DNA of 40,819 nucleotides from Octopus bimaculoides (Eukaryota). The position numbers and the translations under genes are program-made. Positions 9,399 through 40,819 of the stretch are shown here, in pieces. Under the pieces are notes generated by a model. That model did not search any database, was not told the origin of the DNA, and worked only from the letters and a program-made list of their open reading frames with translations. Position 1 is the stretch's first letter. Every line of letters begins with the position of its first letter. Location: assembly GCF_001194135.2 (NCBI RefSeq), contig NC_069000.1, positions 16,152,396 through 16,193,214 of the forward strand, in the 5' to 3' direction.

Positions 9399-9755
9399 GC
9401 TTTCTCAACCACATGGTTCCAGGTTCAGTCCCACTGCGTGGCACCTTGGAATACTGTCTTCTGCTAGAGCCTCGGGCTGACTGAAGCCTTGTGAGTGGAT
9501 TTATTAGACGGAAACTGAAAGAAGCCCGTCGTATATTTATATATGTATATGTCTTTCTGTGTGTGTGTGTTTTTGTATCAGTATTTGTTCACCCCACCAT
9601 CGCTTGACAACCGATGGTGGTGTGTTTATGTCCTCGTAATAGAGACCGATAGAATAAGTACTAGGCTTACTAAGAATAAGTCCTGGTGTCGATTTCTTTG
9701 ACTAAAAGACCCTTTAAGTGGTGCTCCAGTATGGCTGCAGTCAAATGACTGAAAA
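9399..9755 (+). mobile_element. tRNA-derived SINE (octopus-type family 1), 5'-eroded
   Basis: GGTTCAGTCCCACTGCGTGGCACCTTGG head, internal (TA/TG)n, CAGTCAAATGACTGAAA tail; near-identical to 12876-13416 and 24875-25280. Confidence 0.85.
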
Positions 9756-10159
9756 GTGTAAAACTATAAAAGGGTGTATATATATATATANNNNNNNNNN
9801 NNNNNNNNNNNNNNNNNNNNNNNNNNNNNNNNNNNNNNNNNNNNNNNNNNNNNNNNNNNNNNNNNNNNNNNNNNNNNNNNNNNNNNNNNNNNNNNNNNNN
9901 NNNNNNNNNNNNNNNNNNNNNNNNNNNNNNNNNNNNNNNNNNNNNNNNNNNNNNNNNNNNNNNNNNNNNNNNNNNNNNNNNNNNNNNNNNNNNNNNNNNN
10001 NNNNNNNNNNNNNNNNNNNNNNNNNNNNNNNNNNNNNNNNNNNNNNNNNNNNNNNNNNNNNNNNNNNNNNNNNNNNNNNNNNNNNNNNNNNNNNNNNNNN
10101 NNNNNNNNNNNNNNNNNNNNNNNNNNNNNNCAAATTTGAACTATATATAAAATAATTAA

Positions 10160-10494
10160 TGCGCCCTTTTAAAGCCTAGCTCGGCTCATGGACCCGGTTT
10201 CCCGGTTTCTATGGCGTATGTGTTCCCCAGCTGGACGGGACGCCAGTCCATCGTAGCATTATTCATTTTTGTCAGCTGAGTGGACTGGAGCAAATCGACC
10301 CCAGGACTTATTCTTTGGAAGCCTAGTACTTATTGCATCGGTCTCTTTCGCCGAACCGCTAAGTTACGGGGACGTAAACACACCAGCATCGGTTGTCAAA
10401 CGATGTTGGGGGGGGGGGAGAAACACAGACACAAACATATACACACACATATATATATACATATATACGAAGGACTTCTTTCAGTTTTCCGTCT
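10160..10494 (-). mobile_element. Composite/partial SINE (family 1 body)
   Basis: Contains GCCGAACCGCTAAGTTACGGGGACGTAAACACACCAGCATCGGTTGTCAA, shared with 12876-13416. Confidence 0.75.
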
Positions 10495-12720: not shown

Positions 12721-12875
12721 ACTCGAGTACAAGGAAGAACTTTACTGTTTCCGTAAGTTGATTATTTGTATGAGAAGACTTCAATTTCTGTTGGAGGAAT
12801 TTAGAAAAATAATGTACGTATGGGCTCACTACTTCTTGCCAAATTATACTCTTTTACTCTTTACTCTTTTACTTC

Positions 12876-13219
12876 TTTCAGTCATTTGACTGCGGCCATG
12901 CTGGAGCACCGCCTTTAGTCGAGAAAATCGACCCCCAGGACTTATTCTTTGTAAGCTTAGTACTTATTCTATCGGTCTCTTTTTGCCGAACCGCTAAGTT
13001 ACGGGGACGTAAACACACCAGCATCGGTTGTCAAGCGATGGTGGGGGGACAAACACAGACACACATACATACACACACACACACACACACANNNNNNNNN
13101 NNNNNNNNNNNNNNNNNNNNNNNNNNNNNNNNNNNNNNNNNNNNNNNNNNNNNNNNNNNNNNNNNNNNNNNNNNNNNNNNNNNNNNNNNNNNNNNNNNNN
13201 NNNNNNNNNNNNNNNNNNN

Positions 13220-15139: not shown

Positions 15140-15463
15140 CTATTACGATTTCAAGAATAACACCATCTGATGGTATTGTCGCAATTAGAAAGACAGGAAA
15201 TATTACAATAACATGCCAGTATGAGGTGAATAGTCTTCCTGACTTCAAACTCCAACGAAACGGAGAGACAGTTGTACATATACAATATTCCACAAGCGAC
15301 CATAAATATGAAAAAATACAAACTACCAAAGGTTTCGACTGTAGTTTACCTACAGGTAACGCGGGTAATATTGTCTGTTGGAAAGCCACTCCCAAATGCA
15401 ATGATATAGCAAACTACACGTGTGTAACACCCGAAGAATCTTCATCCCCGAAAAGGTTTAAAG
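15140..15463 (+). CDS. Gene B exon 2, V-like Ig domain (ITISRITPSDGIVAIRKTGNITITCQY...GFDC...IVCWKATPKCNDIANYTCVTPEESSSPKRFK)
   Basis: ttttag acceptor and G|gttagg donor, 324 nt, phase 1-1. B-strand Cys and D-x-x-x-Y-x-C F-strand motif. Paralogous to 34883-35200. Confidence 0.85.
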
Positions 15464-18909: not shown

Positions 18910-19234
18910 CCATATCTACCCCTCGGACAATCACAATTTACAACCGAACGAGGGAATATAACATGTTATATACAGTCTTCAGATGTGTAGTATTTGTCGT
19001 CCCGCCTAGTCCTCAAAATTTAACGATAATATGGACATTGTTCGGTCCTAATATAAACAATGTAACAAAATATGATTACCCAGTAGTTCCTGCTCCGAAG
19101 ACATGTTTTTCTCGGGTAACATCAATTTATTCTTACTCTGAGGATACCAATGACCAATATTTAAGAACCATCGCATGTCAGACACCTTATGGTTTAGTTG
19201 ATTCAAAAGTGAGCAAAGTAATGTTTACTCAGAG
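18910..19234 (+). CDS. Gene B exon 3, second Ig-like domain (ISTPRTITIYNRTREYNMLYTVFRCVVFVVPPSPQNLTIIW...KTCF...TIACQTPYGLVDSKVSKVMFTQ)
   Basis: ttttcag acceptor, phase-1 start, three conserved Cys and Trp. Donor AG|gtaaat is homologous to the gene A donor; an alternative donor AAA|gtgagc at 19208/19209 is possible. Confidence 0.8.
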
Positions 19235-19606
19235 GTAAATTAATTTTCTAATTGTTACCTTAGTGTTTTCGTGTTTTTCTTGTAGCAGTGCTTATTTAGC
19301 CTTAGGTCAGCCCAGATCTAACAGGCAGATGATCTAGGGTATTCTAGCCGTGAAAATCCCATCTGTTTTGTTTTTTTCCTTTCAGGAAGACTATACGACT
19401 ATAATATCCAACGTATACAACTTAGTGTTAAGTCAGATTTTGTGACGTATTGAAGATTTGGTTACTATTTCTAACTGGTCAAAATGCCACATAGATGTTT
19501 TCTTGTTTATATATGTCGATCACTAGTTTAAGATTTCACTGTTTACAGTTACTCTATGCTATTGTAGGTACTCATCCTTTTGATACCTTTCTTTTGTGTA
19601 ATCATA

Positions 19607-20399: not shown

Positions 20400-20620
20400 C
20401 TATTTCTTTATTGCCTACAAGGGGCTAAACATAGAGGAGACAAACAAGGACAGACTAAGAGATTAGGTCGATTACATCGACCTCAGTGCGTAACTGGTAC
20501 TTATTTAATCGACCCCGAAAGGATGAAAGACAAAGTCGACCTTGGCAGAATTTGAACTCAGAACGTAACGACAGACGAAATACCGCTAAGCATTTCGCCT
20601 GGCTGCCAGATCACCGCTCT
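20400..20620 (-). mobile_element. tRNA-derived SINE (family 2)
   Basis: Homologous to 17925-18147. Confidence 0.85.
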
Positions 20621-21529
20621 TGGCATCTATAATACGATGCTGAATAGTACATTCTGCTTGACGCCAACGTTATAAATATGAGTGCCTTTATGCATCACGA
20701 ATCCATAACCACAGTATTGTGTGTTCTTACGCAGCAACCAAATTAAGTTGGGGAATAAAAACTGCCTTTTGGTATTAACACTGCTTCTGTCGCTATCAAT
20801 TAATTTTAATAGCCCTAGTGGCTACTTGCGACATTATTTCCTTAATAGACATTAATATCCTACTCATCGTTGACGGGAGATTCGGCTGATTATTTTGCTA
20901 CTGGATCTCTGTCATTGAGCAAATCACATGACCTGGCAGTTCTAGTGACCGTAGCAGACGGTTCACGTCTGTCAAAGATATAAATACGAGTGCTTTCATG
21001 CAGCACCATTTCATATGAAGTAAAGAACGCAGTATTCTGTGTTCAATATGTCTTTATGGTCATTGTTGATCTTACCCTTTTACTCGATGTAAACCCCTTT
21101 CTGCTTTCATGTTTTCTTTTTACTTCGTCCATGCAGCAGTAAAAGGAAATTGTTAGTATCATCACCCTTGTTGCGCCGTCATCATTAGTCTTCTAACGCA
21201 ATAATGGAGTTTCTTTGGAGTCATTCAACCTGTTCAAAATGTCAGCGAAGTTTTTATCAAAGTACATCTCCATACATCTTAAATAAATATACAATGGTAT
21301 CTGATAATGTAGTTTTAGACATAAAGAAAACACTTCATGGTTATGGTTGAAATGCCTTTCGTGATTGGTTTACGCAATCGCAGCTGACCTAGACGTTACA
21401 AAATATAGATCAAGTTTGACGTGCAATTATATTTAAGTTATACAACATTTAACACAAAGCTTCAGAATTGAGTAGATTTTTGTTTATGCAAATTACGATT
21501 GTAATGTATATCGCTTTCATATATCAGCC

Positions 21530-22937
21530 CCTAAATAAATACTGCTGCCATATTTCATTTTCCACTCCTTGGTAGAGTTGTTAAAGTCCTGTATATTCTG
21601 ATGGAAGCTTTCGGCTAGCTCTTCTGAGTACATCTTCATGTTCTCCTTGAAGTTATCAAGATGAATGTTAGGGACATCTTGCAAACGATTTTGTTTAAGT
21701 GCCTCACCAAAGTCTCAATCAAACTCGCTTAATTTTCTATCTTGTGAGTAAGCAGGAACCATGAATCACCGTCGCAAACTGTTTTCAAATTCTTGTTGAG
21801 TGTCTTGGGAGATTTCTTGTTTTATTTTATCTGGTCTAACAAAGGGTCTTCTTTATTTGTGTTCCAACAAAAGACACCTGCTTCGACCTTTGACGCAGAG
21901 AGCTTTAGAAAGAATTCTTGAATGTGCTTAAAGTCTGCAGACTCCTTATAAAGAGACGTTAGTAATCATTTCAGAAGACTAAATATCATGTGGAATGATG
22001 GGAACATCACCTTCCAGAGGGTCTACTAATTCTTCACGCTTACTGTTGTTCTTCACAAGTAATATGACCCGCTGTGTTTAGTACCGCCTTCGATAGTACG
22101 GCACGATGTTACTGAATCACAAAAGAAAGGACTAATAAATATGCTTCAGAAATCATTCATGAATGCCATTCTGAAATCTCCGATAACTTCTCAGCCAACC
22201 TCTACACCACATTGCTCGTGGACGTCGACTCCAACTCGATTGGAGGTTTCATAAACACGATCGTGGAGCTACTGCACAGTTTTCAGTGAATGAGCTAGGG
22301 AAAGATACAGACACATATCTTCATGGCGTAGCATGCCTTTGAGGCAGCTGCTTGAGCTGTTAATGAAGTAGTGCTGCTCGTTGAGTAAAGGCGATTCTCA
22401 AAGAGACAAGCCATATTTTGGCCGAAGCAGGGACTATCTTTCTAAATGAAAAACCTTGAAAAACCCAGGTGACATTTTTTCTACATTGTGACTAAACTTT
22501 CATCTAACCAGTGCAATTATTTGAGCTAAAACATCGAAATCTCAGAATTGGGCTTTACGCAACTAAGGTTTCTGATAAACTCGTGGAGTTGTTGGGGAAT
22601 TTTGGTTGGGGTAGTATGACTTTTTCTCATTCAAATCTGAAATTGCAATCTATTTCTACAATGCCTTCTTGTTTTCCTTGCTGCTCTCTCCAGCACAGTG
22701 GGCACGAAAACGTCAGGGCGATATGACACCGATTCGATGGATGATGGAACCTCTATTTATATCACAATGGAAAAATTCCTGCCAAATGGTCTGTATGGAA
22801 GGATATAACTTGCAGAAGTAGCAATTGCTTGAGTAGTCAACAGGTTCCTGACAAATGCTTGGAATAACGAACTTCATGGTTCTTTTTTCCCTTCTATACA
22901 ATCCTGCCAAGGAGTAAAATGGAATTGCCATTAACAA
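21530..22937 (-). pseudogene. Heavily decayed DNA transposase, CMC/Chapaev3-like
   Basis: Motifs recoverable in order across frameshifts on the minus strand: MKFVIPSICQEPVDYSSNCYFC; FINSSSSCLKGMLRH; LVDP...IIPHDI; KLSASKVEAGVF; a C-terminal MSL...FHQ.I...YQG-like segment. Family name is from recalled consensus. Confidence 0.6.
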
Positions 22938-25089: not shown

Positions 25090-25280
25090 ATGTAGGTGTG
25101 TGTGTTTGTGTATCTCTGTCCCCCCCCACCATCGCTTGACAACTGATGTTGGTGTGTTTACGTCCACGTAACTTGGCGGTTCGGCAAAAGAGACCGTTAG
25201 AATAAGTCCTAGGGTCTATTTGTTCGACTAAAGGCGGTGCTCCAGCATGGCCGCAGTCAAATGACTGAAACAAATAAAAG
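24875..25280 (+). mobile_element. tRNA-derived SINE (family 1), full length
   Basis: GGCGCAGGAGTGG...GGTTCCGGGTTCAGTCCC head and CAGTCAAATGACTGAAA tail. Confidence 0.9.
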
Positions 25281-26116
25281 AATTGGAAAATATAATAAAA
25301 CATAAGAAAATAGCAGGAAAACAATAGATAAATATTAGCAAAATATAAAAATATATCCGAAAAAATATTACAAAACATGTCAAGCCGTTTTATATGATAT
25401 GATTTATTTGTGGGATTAAAATAATCACATATGGAGGATAATGATGGATTCTATACGGTCTATACGAACGACAGAAGAGGCAGAAGATTCAAGATTCTAT
25501 GACTCTTGTCTCCATATTTGGTATAGGTTTGAAGTGATATGTCTTTATCAATGCTATCTGAATGAAGCAGTGTGTTTATGTGAGGGAGAGAGGATGTAAG
25601 AGATTAAAGTTAAAGATTATACCAAGGTGCAAGTGAAAGTGACAGAATTGGAATAAGAGAAAGAGAAAGAGAAAGACAGAGAGAGAGAGAGAGAGAGAAT
25701 GAGAGAGTGAGAGTGATAGAGTGAGAGAGTAAGAGTGTGTGAGAGAGAGAGGACAACTAGAGAATAAGCAAAGAAACAAAAAGAAAATTGAAGCGAAAAA
25801 AGTAAAATGGAAATTAGGAAGAAAGAAGAAGAAAAAAGAAAAGCGAGAGAACCATAAAGAAAGAAATGAGATAATAGTTTATATTTTCTTCTCATCCAAT
25901 CACGCTCTTTCTATTTCCCTCTCGAAATACTTATAAAATGGTTCGCCATTTACCAAACGGTAGACATAGTTATCTGTAAAAAGACCAAATAATATGTTCC
26001 CTGAAGACCTTCTCATTCACTATATATTTACCCTTGCAACACCAGTTACAGAAATCCAAACAACTATAATGGTATGAACTATAATATAATACGTCGATAA
26101 TTCTTTGCTTTTGCAG

Positions 26117-26250: not shown

Positions 26251-26539
26251 AGAACACTTGATTCTATGTATGTCATTGTTCGGTTTTATTTCAAGATTTA
26301 TTGCCAATAGAAAAAGAGTCGGTTTCTAACCTAGATTCAAGGCTCCATCATTGGAACTTCAACATCAACAACAGGGTATTTTGTATGTATGTATGTATGT
26401 ATGTATAGGTGCAGATTTGTATGATTTGCTTTATGTATGTATTCTCATGCATATAGTTGCATATCTAGACGTGCTCATATATATTTAAATGATAAACTTC
26501 TGGAAAGTTTTACAGATTTTTACAGTTCCAGTAAACCAT

Positions 26540-27822
26540 GGTGGAAACGACGCATTGAAAGGGACATAATGCGGGCAAGGCAAGATCTAGGAAAATTTGA
26601 GCAATGGTTAAAAGAAAACTGGAAAAATGGGGAAAAGACCGACCGAGAAAAATTAGAGAAGAAATATGAAATACAGAAGGACGGGTTTGATGCAATAATA
26701 GAGCAATTAAAACAGAGGATCATGGCAAAAATACAGAAGATCAAAAGATTTGTGAACAGAAATAAGCAGTTCGAGGAGAACAGATTGTTCAACAATAACC
26801 CGAAGCAATTCTTCCGAACGTTAGAAGGAGACAATGGGGAAAATGTTGCTCCTGATGTAAATCAAGCCAAGGAGTTCTGAAGCAGATTATGGGGAAACAA
26901 TGTGGTGCGTAAAAGGGATGCAATGAGGATAGGAACTATCAACATAGAATTACAAGGAGGAAAGAAATGAAGGAATAAGCACGAATGATGTGAGAGAACA
27001 AGTGAGTAAAGTGCCTAACTGGAAAACCCCCAGACCAGATAGCATTCCTGGCTTCTGAAGCGTACCACCGAAAGCCTGATCATTGCTGCACAAGACCAGG
27101 CTCTCGGTATCGATTCAGTGAAATATAACATCTATAAAACTTCTGACACCCAGAAATGCAGACTCTGTGGATAGAGTGTGGAAAATGTGACCCACTTGGT
27201 AAGTGGATGTGAGAGCCATACACAAAAAGAATGCAAGCGCCGCCACGATAAAGTGTGTGTGTATCTTCATTAGCTCTTATGCCGTAAATACCAATATGAA
27301 GTAACAGAGAACTGGTATGAGCATGTATGTACCAAGTAAAGTTATGCAGGAGGATGGAAAAGTAACGATACTCTGGGACTATGATTTTCAGACGGATCTT
27401 GTAATCGAACACCGTCGGCCGGATATTGTCACATTGAGTAAGAGAGACAAATACTGTCAGATCATTGATGTAGCCACACCAAATGACATGAACGTTGTGA
27501 GTAAAGAGGTTGAAAAAATCACCAATTACTCCGAATTGAAAGTGGAAATGGTCAGACTGTATAGAATGCGAGAGGGTAATGTAAAAGTGATACCACTGGT
27601 GATCGGAGCCTTGGGCTCAATCCCATTGAAACTTCAAGACTTCATAAGGCAACTGGAAATCCCATGCAAGATTGATGTCTTGCAAAGAGCAGCTTTATTG
27701 TGCACAGAGCACATCTTAAGGAAAGTATTATCCATCTGAGGTCCTTGATGTGACTTGACAGAAGACTGAAGATTCCGGTGCATTTTTACCTACACTGTGT
27801 TACGAAGGAATAATAATGATTA
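26540..27822 (+). mobile_element. R4/Dong- or NeSL-like RLE non-LTR retrotransposon with internal deletion of the RT core
   Basis: IEQLKQRIMAKIQKIKRF...NWKTPRPDSIPGF joined directly to LKRTTESLIIAAQDQAL, CRLCG..HLVSGC knuckle, ILWDYDFQTD..RRPDI..IIDVATP RLE domain, stop 27737-27739, 3' UTR and (AAT)n tail. Confidence 0.85.
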
Positions 27823-28806: not shown

Positions 28807-30279
28807 ACACATACATATATGCAGGAGGACTTAGAAATTTCTGGTGTGGTAACAGACTGTGCAGGTAGATTACCAGGGTAAGTTGAAATCTAAACCGTGG
28901 CGAAAAGAACAGACATACTCTAATAGAAAATACTGAGATAGGTCGTTCGTTGAGTTTGTGGAAAACGTTTGCAACAACTTTCTTCTATTAGTATTTTCAA
29001 ACAGCGTGGCTGGTACTACACAAGCGTCGGCTCATAAAATCATCTGGCTATCATCTTAACTGATACATTACACATACACGACGAAATGACAGTAGAATCT
29101 ACCTATGGATTTTCCAGGTACTGTTTCATCGATGTTAGGTAACACCAAGACGTTATGCAACAAAATCTGCTCGGTTACCAAATGTAATTGTTGCAGGAAC
29201 TGGGAATGCAGTACAAAGGATTCAATGAAGAAGAACAGCAACCCATTAAGATATTCTTAGGAAGAATGTCATGGAATTCGTAGAGAAAGGGGCCAGAGTA
29301 ATACAGCTTTCGTTTCCGACCTATTTAACTCTACCAAGAAGCTACTCGTGATGTGGGTTTCTCGAATGCTTGGTGGGTGAAGTATATACTTTTTATTCTC
29401 GACTGCCTGGGTGACCCTGCAGTAAAAAAGGAGCATGGACAAGGTATAAACCTGATAAACCTTACATCGCCAACGATTGAGTTTTACATGAAGCAATTGA
29501 GCATGAAGAAAGTTCAGGATGTTGTTAAGGCAGTAAGTTTAGCCTCTGCTACCGGGGCTCTTTGCAGTAGCCTACTGAAAGCCAATAAGGNNNNNNNNNN
29601 GGGTTTCTCGAATGCTTGGTGGGTGAAGTATATACTTTTTATTCTCGACTGCCTGGGTGACCCTGCAGTAAAAAAGGAGCATGGACAAGGTATAAACCTG
29701 ATAAACCTTACATCGCCAACGATTGAGTTTTACATGAAGCAATTGAGCATGAAGAAAGTTCAGGATGTTGTTAAGGCAGTAAGTTTAGCCTCTGCTACCG
29801 GGGCTCTTTGCAGTAGCCTACTGAAAGCCAATAAGGAAAAATATTAAGATATTTCAACAAATAAAGAAAATGTGCCGCTTAAATCATACTATCTTTGCAT
29901 TCTGTCTCTTTCTCTCTCTCTCTCTTTCTTTTTCTCGTTCGCTCTCTCTTTTCCTCTTGGTGTTATATTCTTTCATTCTATCACTTTGTCGATTTTCTCA
30001 CGTTCACTTCTTTATTTTTCCCTCTCTTCCTTCTCACGTATTCTTAGTCGCCGTCTCTTTCCTAATCACTTTATTTTCCCCCTCACTCATTCTACTCTGT
30101 GCTGTTTGTGTCTGTGTGTGCGTGTGTTTTGGTGTGTGTGTGTGAGCACGCGCGCGTACTGCGTGAGCCTGTGTGTGTAGGCGCGCGTGAGTGTCTTGTT
30201 CTTAGTTTCTTTTAAACTGTTCTTTTTATATATATATTCTACCTGTCTACTTCTCGAAGCAGAAAGAGAGGGAGTAAAG

Positions 30280-30389: not shown

Positions 30390-30605
30390 AAGTAACAGAA
30401 AATGGAAAATCTCAGCTTCACTCACACTTCGAATTGCACTCCCTCTCTCATTCACACTTACATATATTGTGTTTTGTCATTATCCTTGTTGTTTGACCAT
30501 TTCGACTTCACATTTCGAATCAGACACGTCTTTTCGTTGTTTATTGTTGCTGGGAGCCGAATATCATTTCCCTTTCTGCCTAATACCTGCCTGTTAAGAT
30601 CAGAG
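30390..30605 (+). promoter_or_regulatory. Gene C putative promoter/5' UTR, downstream of a (GA)n tract
   Basis: Alignable with 14400-14628. Confidence 0.45.
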
Positions 30606-30654
30606 ATGTTATTAGTTATATTAATGTTAATGATGGTTCCTTACAATTCAGCCC
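30606..30654 (+). CDS. Gene C exon 1, signal peptide MLLVILMLMMVPYNSA
   Basis: ATG at 30606, hydrophobic core, phase-1 donor C|gtaagt, homologous to 14629-14677. Confidence 0.8.
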
Positions 30655-32104: not shown

Positions 32105-32968
32105 AACAAGCGCAGAAATGTCAGCTCTTCATGGATTGATTATATTAAAGCCTTTGACAGTATACCATATTCGTGGATTCTGAAATCGGTGGGCATTTTC
32201 AAAATTTTTCCTGTGATTTCAGATTTTTTAAAGTATAATATGTCACTACGGAACACGAAGCTCCAATTATATCATTCTAATGGAGTATTGCGCTCAAACA
32301 ATATTAGCATAAACTATGACATTTTCCAAGGTGACTCACTTTCACCACTAATTTTCTGCATAGTACTAATACCACTCTCAACTGAACTGAATAAAACAGG
32401 GTAAGGCTACAAAATTGACAACAGGAAAACAAGCCATCTGTTTTATATGGATGATTTAAAACTATATGACAAAGATGATGAAGAGCTTGAAGGACTACTA
32501 CACAGTGTGAAAGGATTCAGTGATGATATCGCGATGGATTTTGGCATTGAAAAGTGTGCCAAAGCCACTTTTAAGAAAGGGAAACTGGTAAAGTCAAGTT
32601 CAATAGAATTAGATGTCAAAACAGTAATAAAGGAATTTGGGCAGGAACAAACCTATAAATACGTAGGAATTAATGAAGGCTCTGGTATCCAGCATGCAAG
32701 CATGAAAGAGAAGGTTAGGAAGGAATGTTATAGAAGAGTTCGAGCATTTCTGAAGACTGAGCTGAATGCATATAATAAGGTGTTAGCCATAAATTCCTTA
32801 GCAGCCCCAGTTGTTCTTTATAGCTTCAATGTGCTTAACTGGAATACCAGTGAAATAATGAAAATTGATAGAAAAATCCGCAAGCTACTGACTTGTAATA
32901 TGATGCACCATCCAAAGGCAGACGTGGATCGCCTTTACCTTCCCAGAGCTCAGGGAGGTCGAGGTTTG
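32105..32968 (+). mobile_element. RLE-clade LINE reverse transcriptase fragment
   Basis: WIDYIKAFDSIP...IFQGDSLSPLIFC...LFYMDDLKLY...YKYVGI...LYLPRAQGGRGLL; one in-frame stop. Confidence 0.9.
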
Positions 32969-33242
32969 CTGGACAGCTGCCCAAAGGAATGCTGGACGGT
33001 TGCCTGTATCACTATAGTACCTGATAGGACATGCTAATCTCAGCCCGCCAATAATTAGATTGTGGCAGTACTACACACCCTTCGCCACGTAAAATCATCT
33101 GGCTATCATATCAACTGATACATAACAAATACACGAGGAATTGAAGGTAGAATCTGCTTTTCCGCTCTTTCACTCTCAGTGTCTCCCTCTCCCCTTCAGC
33201 GCACGCGCGCAAACACATGAGATAGACAGATAGACAGAGAGA

Positions 33243-33962
33243 AAAGATGGCTATGAATGATTAAAAGTGATTTAAAACCGGAAACGGAGGCTCTAATCTG
33301 TGCTGCCCAAGAGCAAGCCCTAAAAACGAATTACATCAAATACAGAATAGATAACACATCAGAAAGTGCAGAACTTGTTGACAAAATGGTGAAACCGTAT
33401 GGCATATTACCAGTCAATGTACGCCACTAACCCAGAAAGAATAAAAAAAAAGATGGCTAAGGATGATTAAAAGTGATTTAAAACCGGAAACAGAGGCTCT
33501 AACCTGTGTTGCCCATGAGCAAGCACTAAGAACAAACTACATTAGATACAGAATAGACAACACAGCAGAAAGTGATAAGTGCAGAATCTGTGGACAAATC
33601 AGTGAAACTGTATGGCATATTACCAGCCAATGTACGCCACTAGCCCAGATAGAATATAGAGACGCCACGACAATATAGCCAGGCTTGTCCATTGGACACT
33701 TTGCAACAAGTATGGACTTGACAGAACCAAAAATTGGTCCGACAACAAACCCGAAGGTATCATCGAAAATAAAAATGCAAAGATCCTACGGGAATTTATG
33801 ATTCAGTGCGACCATGAGATAGAGAATAGGAAGCCAGACATAGTGTTAATTGAGAAAGAAAACAAACTATGCTGGATAATTGATATAGCATACCTAGCAG
33901 ACAACAAGGTATGCGATAAGGAAGAAAGAAAAGTTGAGACATATGACAGATTAGCTTGGGAA
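33243..33962 (+). mobile_element. RLE-LINE C-terminal fragment with a tandemly duplicated 5' part (33243-33450 and 33451-33962)
   Basis: Two copies of KSDLKPETEAL..AxEQALxTNYI; the second continues CRICG..HITSQC..RRHDNI..IQCD..RKPDIVLIEK..IID. Confidence 0.85.
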
Positions 33963-34366
33963 GAGGACTTATTGGATGCGAACACAGCATTAGGGGTTTC
34001 ATACGAGTAAATTTATATGTAAAAAAAGAGATCAACAGGATGAAAATACTTAGAACACTGTACCATGTCTAAAAGAAAGAAAGTGTTTAAATTTCTATCA
34101 AAATTTGCTACTGATTTCAGTCGCTTAAAAAGACAATTATGACATGCTGAAATAAAGGAAGAATAAATTTATGCACACACACTCACACTCACCCACTCAC
34201 TCACTCACACACACATACACACACATACACACACACACACACACGCACGCATGCACGCACATACACACACAAACACAAACACACACACACACACACGCAC
34301 GGAAAAGCTATGTATATTGTTACCAGGTATATGTGTGTGCGTGTGTGAGTGTAATACTGAGAGAGA

Positions 34367-34882: not shown

Positions 34883-35200
34883 TTGTTGAACTTATCGATA
34901 TATTCCCTCTTGTGGGTATCGACTTTGTAACCGTTGGTGAAATTGGTATAATATGTGTCTATGATGTGCCAAATCTTGTTGAGTTTTTTCTGGTGCAAAA
35001 TCAAAACCATACCGTTGTAAAATTTAAATACAAGAAGGGTGTCTATGAGAAAACAATCATGCAGGAAGGTTTCGACTGTACTGAAATTGTAGGTGATAAA
35101 GGTCAGGTTTTATGCTGGAATTACAATCCCACTTGCGAGGATGCGACATACTACACATGTGAAACACCTTTGGAATCTTCAAAACCTAAACTTCTGAAAG
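34883..35200 (+). CDS. Gene C exon 2, V-like Ig domain (VELIDIFPLVGIDFVTVGEIGIICVY...GFDC...VLCWNYNPTCEDATYYTCETPLESSKPKLLK)
   Basis: Polypyrimidine-cag acceptor, G|gtcagt donor, 318 nt, phase 1-1, same five Cys as gene B exon 2. Confidence 0.85.
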
Positions 35201-36232: not shown

Positions 36233-36535
36233 CAAAATCTTTCATGAAGAATCTGGAACTACTTAACCCGCCCTTTGAAGAGAATAAGACATCGATCTTC
36301 AGATGTACAGCATATGTCGGTACACCTTTTGGTCGTCATGCCTTTGTTTGGATTGACGACACTTATAGCGGCAAAATTAGAAATCATCATTATGTGAATG
36401 TTTCAACTAGTGACAAATGTTATGTTCTAGCAGAGTCAATTCATAATTTCACTGTAAAACTGGACGACCTTGATAGCTCAGTCATCTCATGTGCAGTGTT
36501 TGACAACATACTTCATATACCAATTACCTCAAAAG
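36233..36535 (+). CDS. Gene C exon 3, second Ig-like domain (KSFMKNLELLNPPFEENKTSIFRCTAYVGTPFGRHAFVW...DKCY...VISCAVFDNILHIPITSK)
   Basis: tttttcag acceptor, G|gtgag donor, 303 nt, phase 1-1, three conserved Cys and Trp. Confidence 0.85.
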
Positions 36536-37533: not shown

Positions 37534-37640
<107 letters not shown>

Positions 37641-37643
37641 GCA

Positions 37644-38068
37644 TTTTGCTTTGATTTCACTTTCCAGTTTGGAATAAAAATCTGTATTAAAACATCAAAT
37701 ATTGTGTTTCTAAATACTATTTAATTTCAATTGTTTACATTTTATTCTAGGAAAGGTGCACACACTGACGGAACTACAAGGTACTCCAGGTATATTATAT
37801 CTTTTAACTTTTGCTACTTTCACTTATTTCCCTGTGGCCATGCTAAGTCATTACTCTAAAGGGTCTTCGTCGAACAAATCGACACCAGTGCTTATTGTAA
37901 CGGTCTGTACTGACGAACTGAAAAGCTACGGGTATGTAAACAAACCAACACTGGTTCCCAAGTGTGGGGAACGAATGATAAGACACATACATACGCACGC
38001 TCTCTCTCTTTATCTCTTTCTTTCTCTCTCTCTCACTCTCTCTCACACACACTCTCAACACGCACACG

Positions 38069-38110
<42 letters not shown>
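37644..38110 (+). repeat. Local duplication unit 1 carrying mini-exon 1 and a decayed SINE
   Basis: Aligns with 39965-40410 (offset about 2.32 kb); 52 of 60 nt identical immediately after the exon. Confidence 0.85.
37751..37789 (+). CDS. Gene C candidate 39-nt mini-exon 1 (GKVHTLTELQGTP)
   Basis: ttttattctag acceptor, CAG|gtatat donor, phase 1-1 compatible with the exon 3 donor, no stop. Duplicated at 40073-40111. Confidence 0.55.
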
Positions 38111-38113
<3 letters not shown>

Positions 38114-38269
38114 TCACACATGAACACAGACACACAAGTACACACGATCGCGCGCACGCGCGCACACACACACATGTATACACTCTTTCGGTTCTCTCTT
38201 GATTCTTCACTAAAGATCGGTTTTTTCATAGGAGGTAGGTACCTCAGAATAGAGCGTGTCTCTCCTCAT

Positions 38270-39050
38270 AGGTGTACATTTCGAAGGTTTTAATGATTTT
38301 TGAATTGTTTTTATTCGGAGTGTTCATTATTCCATATGTTTTTGAAAACGTCTGCCTGCCTCCAGTGTTTAGTTCCCATAATATTGTTGCGAAGAGTGAA
38401 TTCCTATTCATTTGGGTTCTTGCTATTACTGTTCTTCATGACTCTCAATGTTTACACTGGGTGTGGTTGGGGGAATGAGAGAGTTCTTCGATCCCTTGGC
38501 TAGTTCCTAACAACGAAGAGAGAATTATCAATTTTGATGACTTCCATGTTGTATTTAGTACCACCATATGACCAGCATCTTCCATCATTTGAAGCTGTTG
38601 ATTTTGTTTTTCTTTCAAGTCTTCAGAAAAGAAAGTCTTGAAGTGGATCTATCTGCCACGTGTTTGTTAGCCAATCTCTCTGCCCTAAATGATGAGCTTT
38701 AAGTTCTTCTTCTCATTCGTTTCTGCCATACACAAATTTGATATCGTTTTGTGATTTTGCAGAGTTCTGAGAAATTACTCCCAACCACATATCATCGAAA
38801 TTTAGGTCGGCACGGAGAAACGTGCCAATATTATTCAACGAAAGTTAGTACGAGCCAGGTCTCAAAGTCACCAGCAGTGTCCTTGATGGTGTCTTTGTTT
38901 TCTCATCCCTGAATATTGTGGGGTAAGATTATAGGCGGGTGTGACTCGTATATTTTGGGTTTGCGTCCTCTATTCTGAAGATGACATTTAAATAGTGTTC
39001 ATACGTCCTCCTCATAATAAAAGGGGTTTCAATTTAAGTGTTGGGCAAAA
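38270..39050 (-). mobile_element. Decayed ORF1/gag-like LINE fragment
   Basis: Frameshifted minus-strand peptides (YNLTPQYSGMRKQR; GRCWSYGG) loosely resemble the 16863-17477 ORF and a zinc knuckle. Confidence 0.35.
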
Positions 39051-39922
39051 CTGCAACCGAATCTACCATAGATGAAACAATTTAAAAAGACTTGACATTA
39101 GGTTTTGGTGAGGCAGAGGTGCGTTAATCTCTTTCTTTATATATATATATATCTTTGTAACTTTGTGACAGATTGTGAAATGGTAGTAACCGTCCTGTGG
39201 ACATAATGTTACAATGCTTTATTTCTTTAATCAAAGTGTTACATAATCAGAGTTTTCTTTTTTGAAATTACACTTGCGAACGATTGAGTTTGCTTAATAA
39301 ACTACACAATATTATTTGAGTATGTAAGTGTTTACTGGTATTCTTTTTGTTGTCTTCAATCGTGCCGTTTGTTATGCTGGTCAACGCCACAATATCATAG
39401 ACTATGGATCTGTTTGAGCAGAATAGACCTGAGGTTAGACAGCTAAAATAAAGAGAAAGTCGACTTCGGTGTAATTCGAACTTATGATATAGCCACGACA
39501 TATTCTGCCTCACGAAGGAGTTTCTATGTGCTAAATAACATCTAACTCTCTCTGAAACGCATTCTGTCGTCTTAGAAAAAGTAAGTTACATTGGACAATG
39601 AAGTCCTACTGATAAAATAAGAGTACTCCCCGCCACCAAAGATTTCCATCCAGTCACACCTTATCATTTAAACAAAATGGCATAACTCTGGCTCAAGCAA
39701 TATGAAATAGGTACTAGTTCATATTTTAAAGTCGATGAGCTAGCAATAGGAAAATATAGCGCGGCCCATATTGACAAATATATAAGAACACTTTCTACAA
39801 AGAAAATCTTTACAAATAAATCGTTATAAAAATTTTTTATACAAAACAACGAGATAAAAGTTATTGACTGAATTTCAGTTCAAGATCGAAATTTGATTCT
39901 AACTCTCGATTGTAGCTCTAGT

Positions 39923-39964
<42 letters not shown>

Positions 39965-39965
<1 letters not shown>

Positions 39966-40410
39966 TTTGCTTTGATTTCACTTCCCAGTTTGGAAGAAAA
40001 AACTGTATTAAAACATCAAGCATAGTGTTTCGAAATACTATTTTGTTTTTAATTCATTATAATTTATTCTAGGAAATCTGCCGCCAACAATCGGACACAC
40101 AGATAATGCAGGTATATTTTATCGTTTACCTTTTGCTTCTTTCACTTATTTCACCGTGGCCATGCTAGATCGTTACTCTAAAGGGTTTTCGTCGAACAAA
40201 TCGACACCAGTGCTTATTGTAACAATCCCTTCTGCCGAACTGAAAAGCTACGAGTATGTAAACAAACCAACACTGGTTCTCAAGTGATTGTGGGGAACGA
40301 ATGATAAGACACATACATACATACATACATACATACATAGGCTCTCTCTTTATCTCTTTATTTTTTCTCTCTCTCTCTCTCTCACACACACACATACACA
40401 CATACACACA
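39965..40410 (+). repeat. Local duplication unit 2 carrying mini-exon 2 and a decayed SINE
   Basis: Aligns with 37644-38110. Confidence 0.85.
40073..40111 (+). CDS. Gene C candidate 39-nt mini-exon 2 (GNLPPTIGHTDNA)
   Basis: tttattctag acceptor, CAG|gtatat donor, same length and phase as 37751-37789, with homologous flanking introns. Confidence 0.55.
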
Positions 40411-40450
40411 CAATATAAATGTTACCTTCTTTACTATGTATGTATATATT

Positions 40451-40765
40451 TTGTTGGTACTCCGTGGCTTACGACGTCGAGGGTTCCAGTTGATCCGATC
40501 AACGGAACAGCCTGCTCGTGAAATTAACGTGCAAGTGGCTGAGCACTCCACAGACACGAGTACCCTTAACGTAGTTCTCGGGGGTATTCAGCGTGACACA
40601 GTGTGACAAGGCTGGCCCTTTGAATTACAGGCACAACAGAGACAGGAAGTAAGAGTGAGAGAAAGTTGTGGTGAAAGAGTACAGCAGGGTTCACCACCAT
40701 CCCCTGCCGGAGCATCGTGGAGCTTTAGGTGTTTTCGCTGAATAAACACTCACAACGCCCGATTT
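40451..40765 (-). mobile_element. SINE-like interspersed repeat (third family)
   Basis: GC-richer segment with GTGAAATTAACGTGCAAGTGGCTGAGCACTCCACAGACAC, recalled as a common octopus SINE body; not verified. Confidence 0.55.
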
Positions 40766-40819
40766 TTCCCCTCCTCTGAAACTTCTGACATTATTCCAAA
40801 TTTAGGAAGGAATATATCT

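Follow-up and report, generated by a model that had tools for sequence, protein, structure and literature searches.

The human IGHG3 gene carries several hinge exons of ~45-51 nucleotides (nt) that arose by tandem exon duplication and are serially spliced, lengthening the spacer between immunoglobulin (Ig)-fold modules. In snake phospholipase A2 (PLA2) and conotoxin genes, the exons outpace the adjacent introns, and non-synonymous exceeds synonymous change. Bacterial IgA proteases are the proposed driver of change in the primate IgA hinge. Adaptive evolution of this hinge is the subject of Sumiyama, Saitou and Ueda (2002, Mol Biol Evol 19:1093), cited here from its entry in the reference list of PMC516797. 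Here, we describe two duplicated 39-nt mini-exons of the gene LOC106880707 of Octopus bimaculoides, which lie in a 40,819-nt stretch (the window; positions refer to it unless a locus is named) placed on chromosome CM046620.1 of assembly GCA_001194135.2. The mini-exons have diverged far faster than the DNA that was duplicated with them, probably through positive selection on the stalk peptide that they encode.

Positions 37603-38078 are directly duplicated at 39924-40412, at an offset of 2321-2326 nt (2322 nt from exon to exon), in agreement with the offset of ~2.3 kb proposed in an earlier, sequence-only reading of this DNA. In each copy, a (CA)n run and ~107 nt of unique sequence, the last of them TTATTCTAG, precede a 39-nt block, which is followed by GTATAT..., an interspersed-repeat fragment and a compound microsatellite. 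Both blocks are mini-exons of phase 1-1, preceded by TTCTAG and followed by GTATAT, and their phase-1 translations are GKVHTLTELQGTP and GNLPPTIGHTDNA. Equal length and phase, direct orientation and flanks that are about 90% identical mark the pair as a tandem exon duplication; the head-to-tail repeat of O. sinensis is larger and spans at least 1.4 kb.

A recount of the differences between the mini-exons (18 of 39 nt) and between the first 60 nt of the downstream introns (8) reproduced the earlier figures exactly. Across the co-duplicated flanks as a whole, 32 of 309 positions differ (10.4%), and the contrast between exon and flanks was supported by Fisher's test (p = 2.5e-7) as well as by a 39-nt scan statistic with 100,000 permutations (p = 4e-5). 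Between the orthologues of O. bimaculoides and O. sinensis, 11 of 39 nt differ in each mini-exon versus 26/309 and 33/309 in the flanks (8-11%); at the flank rate, the binomial probability of at least 22 differences in 78 positions is 2e-6. Background intron substitutions at the locus amount to ~9-12%, and the synonymous divergence (dS) of the two large exons of the gene is 0.134. The flank rate equals both values, and therefore the flanks evolve neutrally, as had been presumed, and are not unusually conserved; by the same comparison, conserved flanks in place of an accelerated exon are ruled out. The mini-exons run at 2.5-4 times the rate of flanks, introns and dS. A small inversion or an alignment artefact within the exon was also considered and rejected, as a compensated 1-nt shift near CGGA(A)C only reduces the 18 mismatches to ~15 plus 2 indels.

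Nei-Gojobori analysis of the pooled orthologues revealed 20.5 non-synonymous differences at 59 sites versus 1.5 synonymous differences at 19 sites (p = 0.017), and the non-synonymous rate also exceeded the rate of the flanks (59/618; p = 4e-7). The synonymous rate of the mini-exons was indistinguishable from the flank rate. For the large exons, a non-synonymous divergence (dN) of 0.125 and a dN/dS ratio (omega) of ~0.93 were obtained; the dN of the mini-exons is ~0.46, nearly fourfold higher. Non-synonymous change thus surpasses the synonymous and neutral rates, as positive selection demands, in a small sample and by a counting method.

The tree of the flanks of the four units (two in each species) is nearly a star, with 1 of 305 sites grouping the units by orthology and none by species. 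Sites that separate unit 1 from unit 2 in both species make up 4 of 39 in the exon versus 1 of 305 in the flanks (p = 7e-4). Parsimony assigns roughly 5-7 exon changes to every terminal branch and about 6 to the internal one. For the O. sinensis branches, of which the sequence-only reading knew nothing, the count is ~10 changes in 78 exon positions versus ~5% expected (p = 0.005). On the O. bimaculoides branches, 7 of the 8 polarised exon changes are from purine to C, versus 1 of 24 in the flanks (p = 2e-5), and therefore both mini-exons of this species are rich in Thr, Pro and His; among the 26 stalk residues, Thr and Pro together number 8 in O. bimaculoides and 1 in O. sinensis. The unit pair of the paralogue LOC106880715 provides a weaker replicate of the rate excess, with 14 of 39 differences in the exon versus 14 of 123 in the downstream flank (p = 0.001).

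The flanks had been attributed to a short interspersed element (SINE). The downstream flank (from about 37797, and from 40119 in the second copy) matches at least four other repeat copies in the window, on both strands (about 9675-9772, 10325-10411, 12850-13072 and 25124-25297). Because these copies lie at unrelated sites and in both orientations, a decayed SINE is a reasonable label for this flank; no tRNA-like or RNA polymerase III head was detected by ARAGORN or Rfam across the window, in which the copies are fragments. The upstream flank (~110 nt) has no further copy in the window and is not repeat-derived, so that the attribution holds for the downstream side and not for the upstream one. 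Units 1 and 2 share derived states of the SINE-like fragment that are missing from the other repeat copies. The repeat was therefore already in place at the time of duplication and can be used as a neutral yardstick. Two independent SINE insertions as the source of the units are ruled out by these shared states, by the non-repeat upstream flank and by the head-to-tail arrangement in O. sinensis; derivation of the exon itself from the SINE is ruled out by the repeat homology beginning about 8 nt past the donor.

The protein spliced from the proposed exons is identical (100%, full length) to O. bimaculoides 'uncharacterized protein LOC106880707 isoform X2' (XP_014786269.1). Joining 30402-30654, 34883-35200, 36233-36535, 37751-37789 and 40073-40111 gives an exact match to residues 1-317 of both isoforms (XP_014786268/9). 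Both NCBI isoforms, which are predicted gene models, read ...ITSK-GKVHTLTELQGTP-GNLPPTIGHTDNA- in series, the UniProt entry from the original genome submission is identical in sequence across both mini-exons, and an O. vulgaris model splices the two orthologous mini-exons together. Judged from these predicted models, both mini-exons appear to be included constitutively and in series. No transcript-derived protein spanning the mini-exon junctions was present in the protein collection searched. The O. sinensis orthologue LOC118766816 (locus L001) carries both units, the first annotated and the second open with intact splice sites, and the duplication is therefore older than the split of O. bimaculoides and O. 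sinensis. Retention of length, frame and splice sites, as originally noted for the two copies, extends to the family: the 11 distinct units are 33, 36 or 39 nt long, all in phase 1-1, all stop-free and with every length change in frame. Frameshifting indels were looked for in the units of other octopods and, with lengths in frame and no stops, were not found.

Pfam returned no family for the LOC106880707 protein at E<=1 except one sub-threshold, unrelated match, so that no curated Ig profile recognises it; UniProt names some family members 'Ig-like domain-containing'. A profile search of 1.84 billion representative proteins yielded 44 clusters only, and all clusters that were looked up are octopod (O. 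bimaculoides, O. sinensis, O. vulgaris and Argonauta hians). An AlphaFold2 model based on 19 family members has two beta-sandwich domains at a mean predicted local distance difference test (pLDDT) score of 89.4; residues 217-232, which are part of the mini-exon region, fall below a pLDDT of 50, i.e., are predicted to be disordered. The top Foldseek matches in the PDB, with a probability of 1.00, are CD4 D1D2, T-cell receptor chains, antibody light chains and butyrophilins, and the Cys and Trp columns are invariant in the 19 family members. According to the predicted model, the large exons A and B are two Ig-like domains at the fold level, and because of these best structural matches, the earlier designation as an Ig pair is correct at that level. 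Overt T/P-rich, mucin-like stalks are found at the same position in other family members. One isoform in the family skips exon B, and alternative 3' ends (glycosylphosphatidylinositol (GPI) or secreted tail) occur.

A transmembrane and cytoplasmic exon with immunoreceptor tyrosine-based inhibition or activation motifs (ITIM/ITAM) had been named as something to look for downstream; the isoform models point to a GPI-like anchor instead. Isoform X1 ends in DKLNGADMITKILTFAAILLFMGNFP, and X2 ends instead in a short hydrophilic tail. By eye, three small residues at the X1 end (...DKL-NGA-DMITK-ILTFAAILLFMGNFP, followed by the stop) lead into a short polar spacer and then into a hydrophobic stretch that closes the protein without a cytoplasmic tail, a pattern that looks like a GPI-attachment-type signal. 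Many paralogues share the ending DKLxxAxIITKIL..., including the hydrophobic stretch, as does O. sinensis; there, unit 2 is followed after 3.9 kb by an intact GPI-type exon and then by an X2-type tail exon. In O. bimaculoides, the window ends at an assembly gap ~20 nt short of the expected acceptor of the GPI exon, and the gap continues just beyond, at 20419-21586 of locus L002 (L002 coordinate = window coordinate - 20401). Because the window closes, right at the gap, with 60 nt that match the sequence preceding the GPI exon, the anchor exon of the O. bimaculoides gene is probably hidden there. The X1 model takes a paralogous copy of the GPI exon 20 kb downstream, itself followed by a second X2-like tail. 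A GPI-signal exon and a second, 75%-identical X2 tail exon are located 20 kb downstream of the gene, at L002 39976-41236, with no domain exons visible between the many gaps; this pair may be the remnant of a further paralogue or belong to a poorly assembled one. Further mini-exon units, for which a look beyond the window had been advised, were not found in the adjoining 29 kb.

We propose that an intron, mini-exon and SINE-like fragment were duplicated head to tail, in tandem, shortly before the O. bimaculoides/O. sinensis split. The two mini-exons, serially spliced, would encode a 26-residue, intrinsically disordered stalk that links the Ig-like pair to a C-terminal GPI-type signal or, in X2, to a short secreted tail, in a protein belonging to an octopod-restricted, tandemly arrayed and fast-evolving family. 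Serial stalk units between the Ig pair and an anchor had been one of two uses suggested for the mini-exons, and the isoform models, the O. vulgaris model, the fold, the disorder and the GPI-like end all point to it. Positive selection would have replaced stalk codons recurrently, on the branch just after the duplication and in all four later lineages, without altering splice sites, length, phase or the last 2-3 codons. In the O. bimaculoides lineage, both exons would have shifted in parallel to Thr, Pro and His codons, as would be suitable for a spacer that is extended and possibly O-glycosylated. We judge positive selection on the stalk peptide to be the probable cause of the acceleration.

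Several observations weigh against this account. Exon use is read from predicted gene models, and the O. sinensis Gnomon model terminates in an exon between units 1 and 2. In deep paralogue comparisons, the u2-type exon (the one preceding the anchor exon) shows no extra divergence (0.24-0.38 vs 0.27-0.45 in the flanks), and therefore the acceleration is not uniform across the family; nor is it uniform along the exon, of which the last ~8 nt and the ...DNA motif are conserved. With 13 codons per exon and two species, the contrast of dN and dS rests on ~22 substitutions. The omega of the whole gene is near 1, and a weakly constrained background plays a part; the shift from purine to C fits selection at the RNA level equally well; and GPI anchoring was judged by eye only. 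The O. sinensis terminal exon (L001 26537-26668) is likely to be an annotation artefact or a species-specific alternative end. The corresponding segment precedes every mini-exon unit of the family and contains stops elsewhere, with copies at L001 24248-24392, L003 8497-8559 and L004 21516-21584 and 57796-57870; it is deleted in O. bimaculoides LOC106880707.

Relaxed constraint offers a non-adaptive explanation, in which a disordered spacer tolerates nearly any residue and the excess reflects chance or a local mutational hotspot. The predicted disorder of the stalk, the gene-wide omega of ~0.93, the mere 39 nt per exon and the CA-rich, microsatellite-like runs within the exon are all in keeping with it. 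The ceiling of relaxed constraint, however, is the neutral rate, and yet the exon runs at 2.5-4 times the rate of flanks, introns and dS on every branch. A hotspot should raise synonymous change, which is not raised (1.5/19), and should keep the local mutation spectrum, whereas the ratio of transitions to transversions is 6:16 in the exon versus 33:26 in the flanks (p = 0.026). Conservation of frame, length and splice sites in the 11 units likewise speaks against a loss of constraint, which we consider unlikely as the explanation.

The module as a whole recurs in paralogues of the cluster, which occupies about 16.1-16.4 Mb of CM046620.1, as a phase 1-1 mini-exon with the same acceptor context, the junction GCAG/GTAT and the same repeat fragment. 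Two units are found in LOC106880715 (EIEEERRGETNTI and GSEQKELVEIDNA) and a single one each in the gene at locus L005 (GNDWNHFGQTDNA) and in LOC106880709 (GWKQREIGQNNA, 36 nt); three O. vulgaris unit copies are 33 nt long (GTEQKAIRDNA). What varies in the mini-exon is the 5' and central core; the last ~8 nt and, in the peptide, the C-terminal (D/A)NA motif are conserved throughout the family. For LOC106880715, no clear O. sinensis orthologue was found (best match 52% identity). Across paralogues, the units cluster by gene and not by position, and therefore the paralogues may have duplicated the unit independently or homogenised it. It is conceivable, if rather unlikely, that mini-exon and conserved intron form a family-wide diversification cassette, with a hypervariable core of 20-30 nt between invariant splice sites and homologous flanks; the core would then be renewed by short-tract exchange or targeted mutation and subsequently sorted by selection. 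If so, the stalk and not the Ig domains would be the interface of an arms race in host-pathogen or self-recognition (e.g., as a protease target or for glycan display), and the family would be an invertebrate counterpart to antibody-hinge evolution. Three near-identical 33-nt units with the peptide GTEQKAIRDNA lie at L004 22013-22211, 47482-47680 and 58302-58500, spaced 11-25 kb apart. The O. vulgaris models P0005, P0006 and P0010 chain units and domains of adjacent gene copies, which suggests that the gene models in this cluster are fused.

Very short exons rely on splicing enhancers. Selection could thus have acted on the RNA, for exonic enhancers (e.g., A/C-rich) through which a 39-nt micro-exon is recognised, with the protein sequence largely irrelevant. 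Such selection would accommodate the parallel gain of C in both O. bimaculoides exons as well as an exon GC content of 0.49-0.51 versus 0.34 in the flanks, but the O. sinensis exons are accelerated too, without C enrichment, and the changes avoid synonymous sites. Moreover, the shift yields Thr, Pro and His codons in a family that has T/P-rich stalks, so that selection on the protein explains it equally well. As the principal cause, selection on the RNA is improbable.

Ectopic micro-gene-conversion would turn the exons into a patchwork of tracts from neighbouring paralogue mini-exons and thereby inflate the apparent rate. The cluster is rich in homologous modules with similar flanks, and the 3' 21 nt of O. 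bimaculoides unit 2 differ at 1 position from the next-but-one paralogue (L005) and at 3 from the O. sinensis orthologue. Against this, the flanks carry gene-specific signatures, evolve at the neutral rate and give a star-like tree with no imported tracts, and the hypervariable 5' and central core matches no sampled paralogue. Moreover, tracts ending precisely at the splice sites would be required, except where they are filtered by selection, and then selection is part of the explanation again. Conversion as the source of the excess is accordingly quite improbable; beside positive selection on the peptide, splicing-enhancer selection and short-tract conversion from paralogues are both possible contributors.

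The second suggested use of the mini-exons, as alternatively spliced or mutually exclusive cassettes that tune the length or sequence of the stalk, would be favoured by each exon being a multiple of 3, so that skipping keeps the frame, and by the alternative 3' ends and the exon-B-skipping isoform of the family. Both exons, however, are present in the O. vulgaris model and in every annotated isoform of LOC106880707 and LOC106880715, none of which skips or swaps a mini-exon. Nor was a steric, frame-based or inverted-repeat mechanism for enforcing mutual exclusivity found, given exon lengths that are multiples of 3, an intron of 2.28 kb and flanking inverted repeats consisting only of microsatellites; this use found no support and is very improbable. 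Least probable of all is an old duplication whose introns were kept similar by conversion while the exons escaped, leaving the flanks artificially young: paralogous flank divergence (~10%) no greater than orthologous (8-11%) despite a pre-split duplication and the clustering of units by gene agree with it, but the orthologue excess after the split (11/39 vs ~9.5%) is left unexplained and within-species paralogue distances equal the cross-species distances.

Table 1. Coordinates of the features of LOC106880707 and of its duplicated mini-exon units in the window.
Feature	Position	Strand	Remarks
Annotated first coding exon of LOC106880707	30402..30654	+	donor C/GTAAGT; part of the spliced translation matching model residues 1-317
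Exon A, first Ig-like domain, phase 1-1	34883..35200	+	AlphaFold2 beta-sandwich; Foldseek Ig-superfamily matches
Exon B, second Ig-like domain, phase 1-1, ending ...ITSK G/gtgagc	36233..36535	+	AlphaFold2 beta-sandwich; Foldseek
(CA)n microsatellite, 5' edge of unit 1	37535..37643	+	
Unique upstream flank of unit 1, with polypyrimidine tract and acceptor TTATTCTAG	37644..37750	+	13% different from the unit 2 copy
Mini-exon 1, 39 nt, phase 1-1, GKVHTLTELQGTP	37751..37789	+	in XP_014786268/9; O. sinensis orthologue annotated as GDVQAVRELKANA
Antisense 3' part of SINE-like repeat, co-duplicated with the exon	37797..37990	+	begins about 8 nt past the donor
Compound microsatellite (CT)n(CA)n, 3' edge of unit 1	37991..38190	+	
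(CA)n, 5' edge of unit 2	39924..39962	+	
Upstream flank of unit 2, acceptor TTATTCTAG	39965..40072	+	
Mini-exon 2, 39 nt, phase 1-1, GNLPPTIGHTDNA	40073..40111	+	in XP_014786268/9; O. sinensis/O. vulgaris orthologue (G/S)QVQIPIEHKDNA
Second copy of the SINE-like fragment, then (CATA)n(CT)n(CA)n to about 40412	40119..40320	+	
Sequence homologous to the 60 nt immediately 5' of the GPI-signal exon in O. sinensis and in the X1 model	40760..40819	+	

The true start of LOC106880707 is probably the Met at 30606, which would open a typical signal peptide, MLLVILMLMMVPYNSA, because the orthologue and the paralogues begin with MLL... The annotated N-terminal 68 residues (MENLSFTHTS..., 30402-30605) are of low complexity and occur in neither the orthologue nor the paralogues. 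A literature search on the LOC identifiers of these loci returned no papers, and general searches returned nothing specific.

The window is eukaryotic in character, AT-rich, packed with microsatellites and interrupted by ten runs of N. Two identical 236-bp blocks (29355-29590 and 29601-29836) flank a 10-N gap and are almost certainly an artefact of scaffolding or gap closing, not a biological duplication. A second member of the Ig-like family in the window, LOC128250267 (P0018/P0048), occupies 15140-15463 and about 18963-19238; no mini-exon unit was found downstream of it in the window, and its models end in a short hydrophilic tail. Several open reading frames at 26437-27739, between the two family genes, and at 32189-34010, in intron 1 of LOC106880707, resemble retroelement fragments, and a Pfam match was obtained for just one of them (zf-RVT, weak and sub-threshold). 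An interspersed repeat different from the co-duplicated one follows unit 2 at 40440-40760, with copies at L001 8191-8303 and 14433-14535 and at about L002 24900-25100.

To our knowledge, cephalopods are without antibodies, and little is known of their fast-evolving surface receptors. The co-duplicated repeat fragment, a few bases from the exon, provides an internal neutral yardstick and makes this a compact, well-controlled case, in which the turnover of a 13-residue linker exceeds that of neutral DNA several-fold, in two species and in two exon copies. If confirmed with more species and RNA, the octopod Ig-like, GPI-type family would become an immune or recognition candidate, and its stalk would count as a feature under selection and not as a passive spacer. 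In practical terms, the gain is modest, as gene models already exist and vertebrate precedents are known.

Among described systems, the nearest in architecture are two-Ig surface proteins that are GPI-anchored or secreted, with V-C pairs resembling CD4 D1D2 or butyrophilins. They have in common with the octopus protein a signal peptide, two Ig-like beta-sandwiches with conserved Cys and Trp residues, domain exons in phase 1-1 and a stalk; the putative C-terminal anchor and the alternative secreted tail of the octopus models have counterparts there as well. Unlike these Ig-superfamily neighbours, the octopus family has no detectable similarity to any Pfam Ig family and is found in octopods only. 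The closest parallels otherwise are venom genes, the IGHG3 hinge exons and the primate IgA hinge. Of these, venom genes are hypervariable in the folded, active toxin itself, whereas here it is the disordered spacer of a cell-surface protein that varies. The human IGHG3 gene likewise has serial, duplicated short hinge exons, but its hinge repeats are nearly identical, whereas the octopus copies differ at 46% of nucleotides. Accelerated change in a linker had been called unusual by the sequence-only reading; it is uncommon, but there is precedent, such as the primate IgA hinge. Like the octopus stalk, that hinge is a short, flexible linker of the Pro/Thr/Ser type beside Ig domains; it is reported to evolve adaptively and to outpace its surroundings while the folded domains are kept. 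Unlike the stalk, it is part of the heavy chain of vertebrate antibodies, and no separate pair of duplicated mini-exons encodes it. The octopus stalk is, then, a further example of a known phenomenon, in an unstudied, lineage-restricted family, and not a new mechanism.

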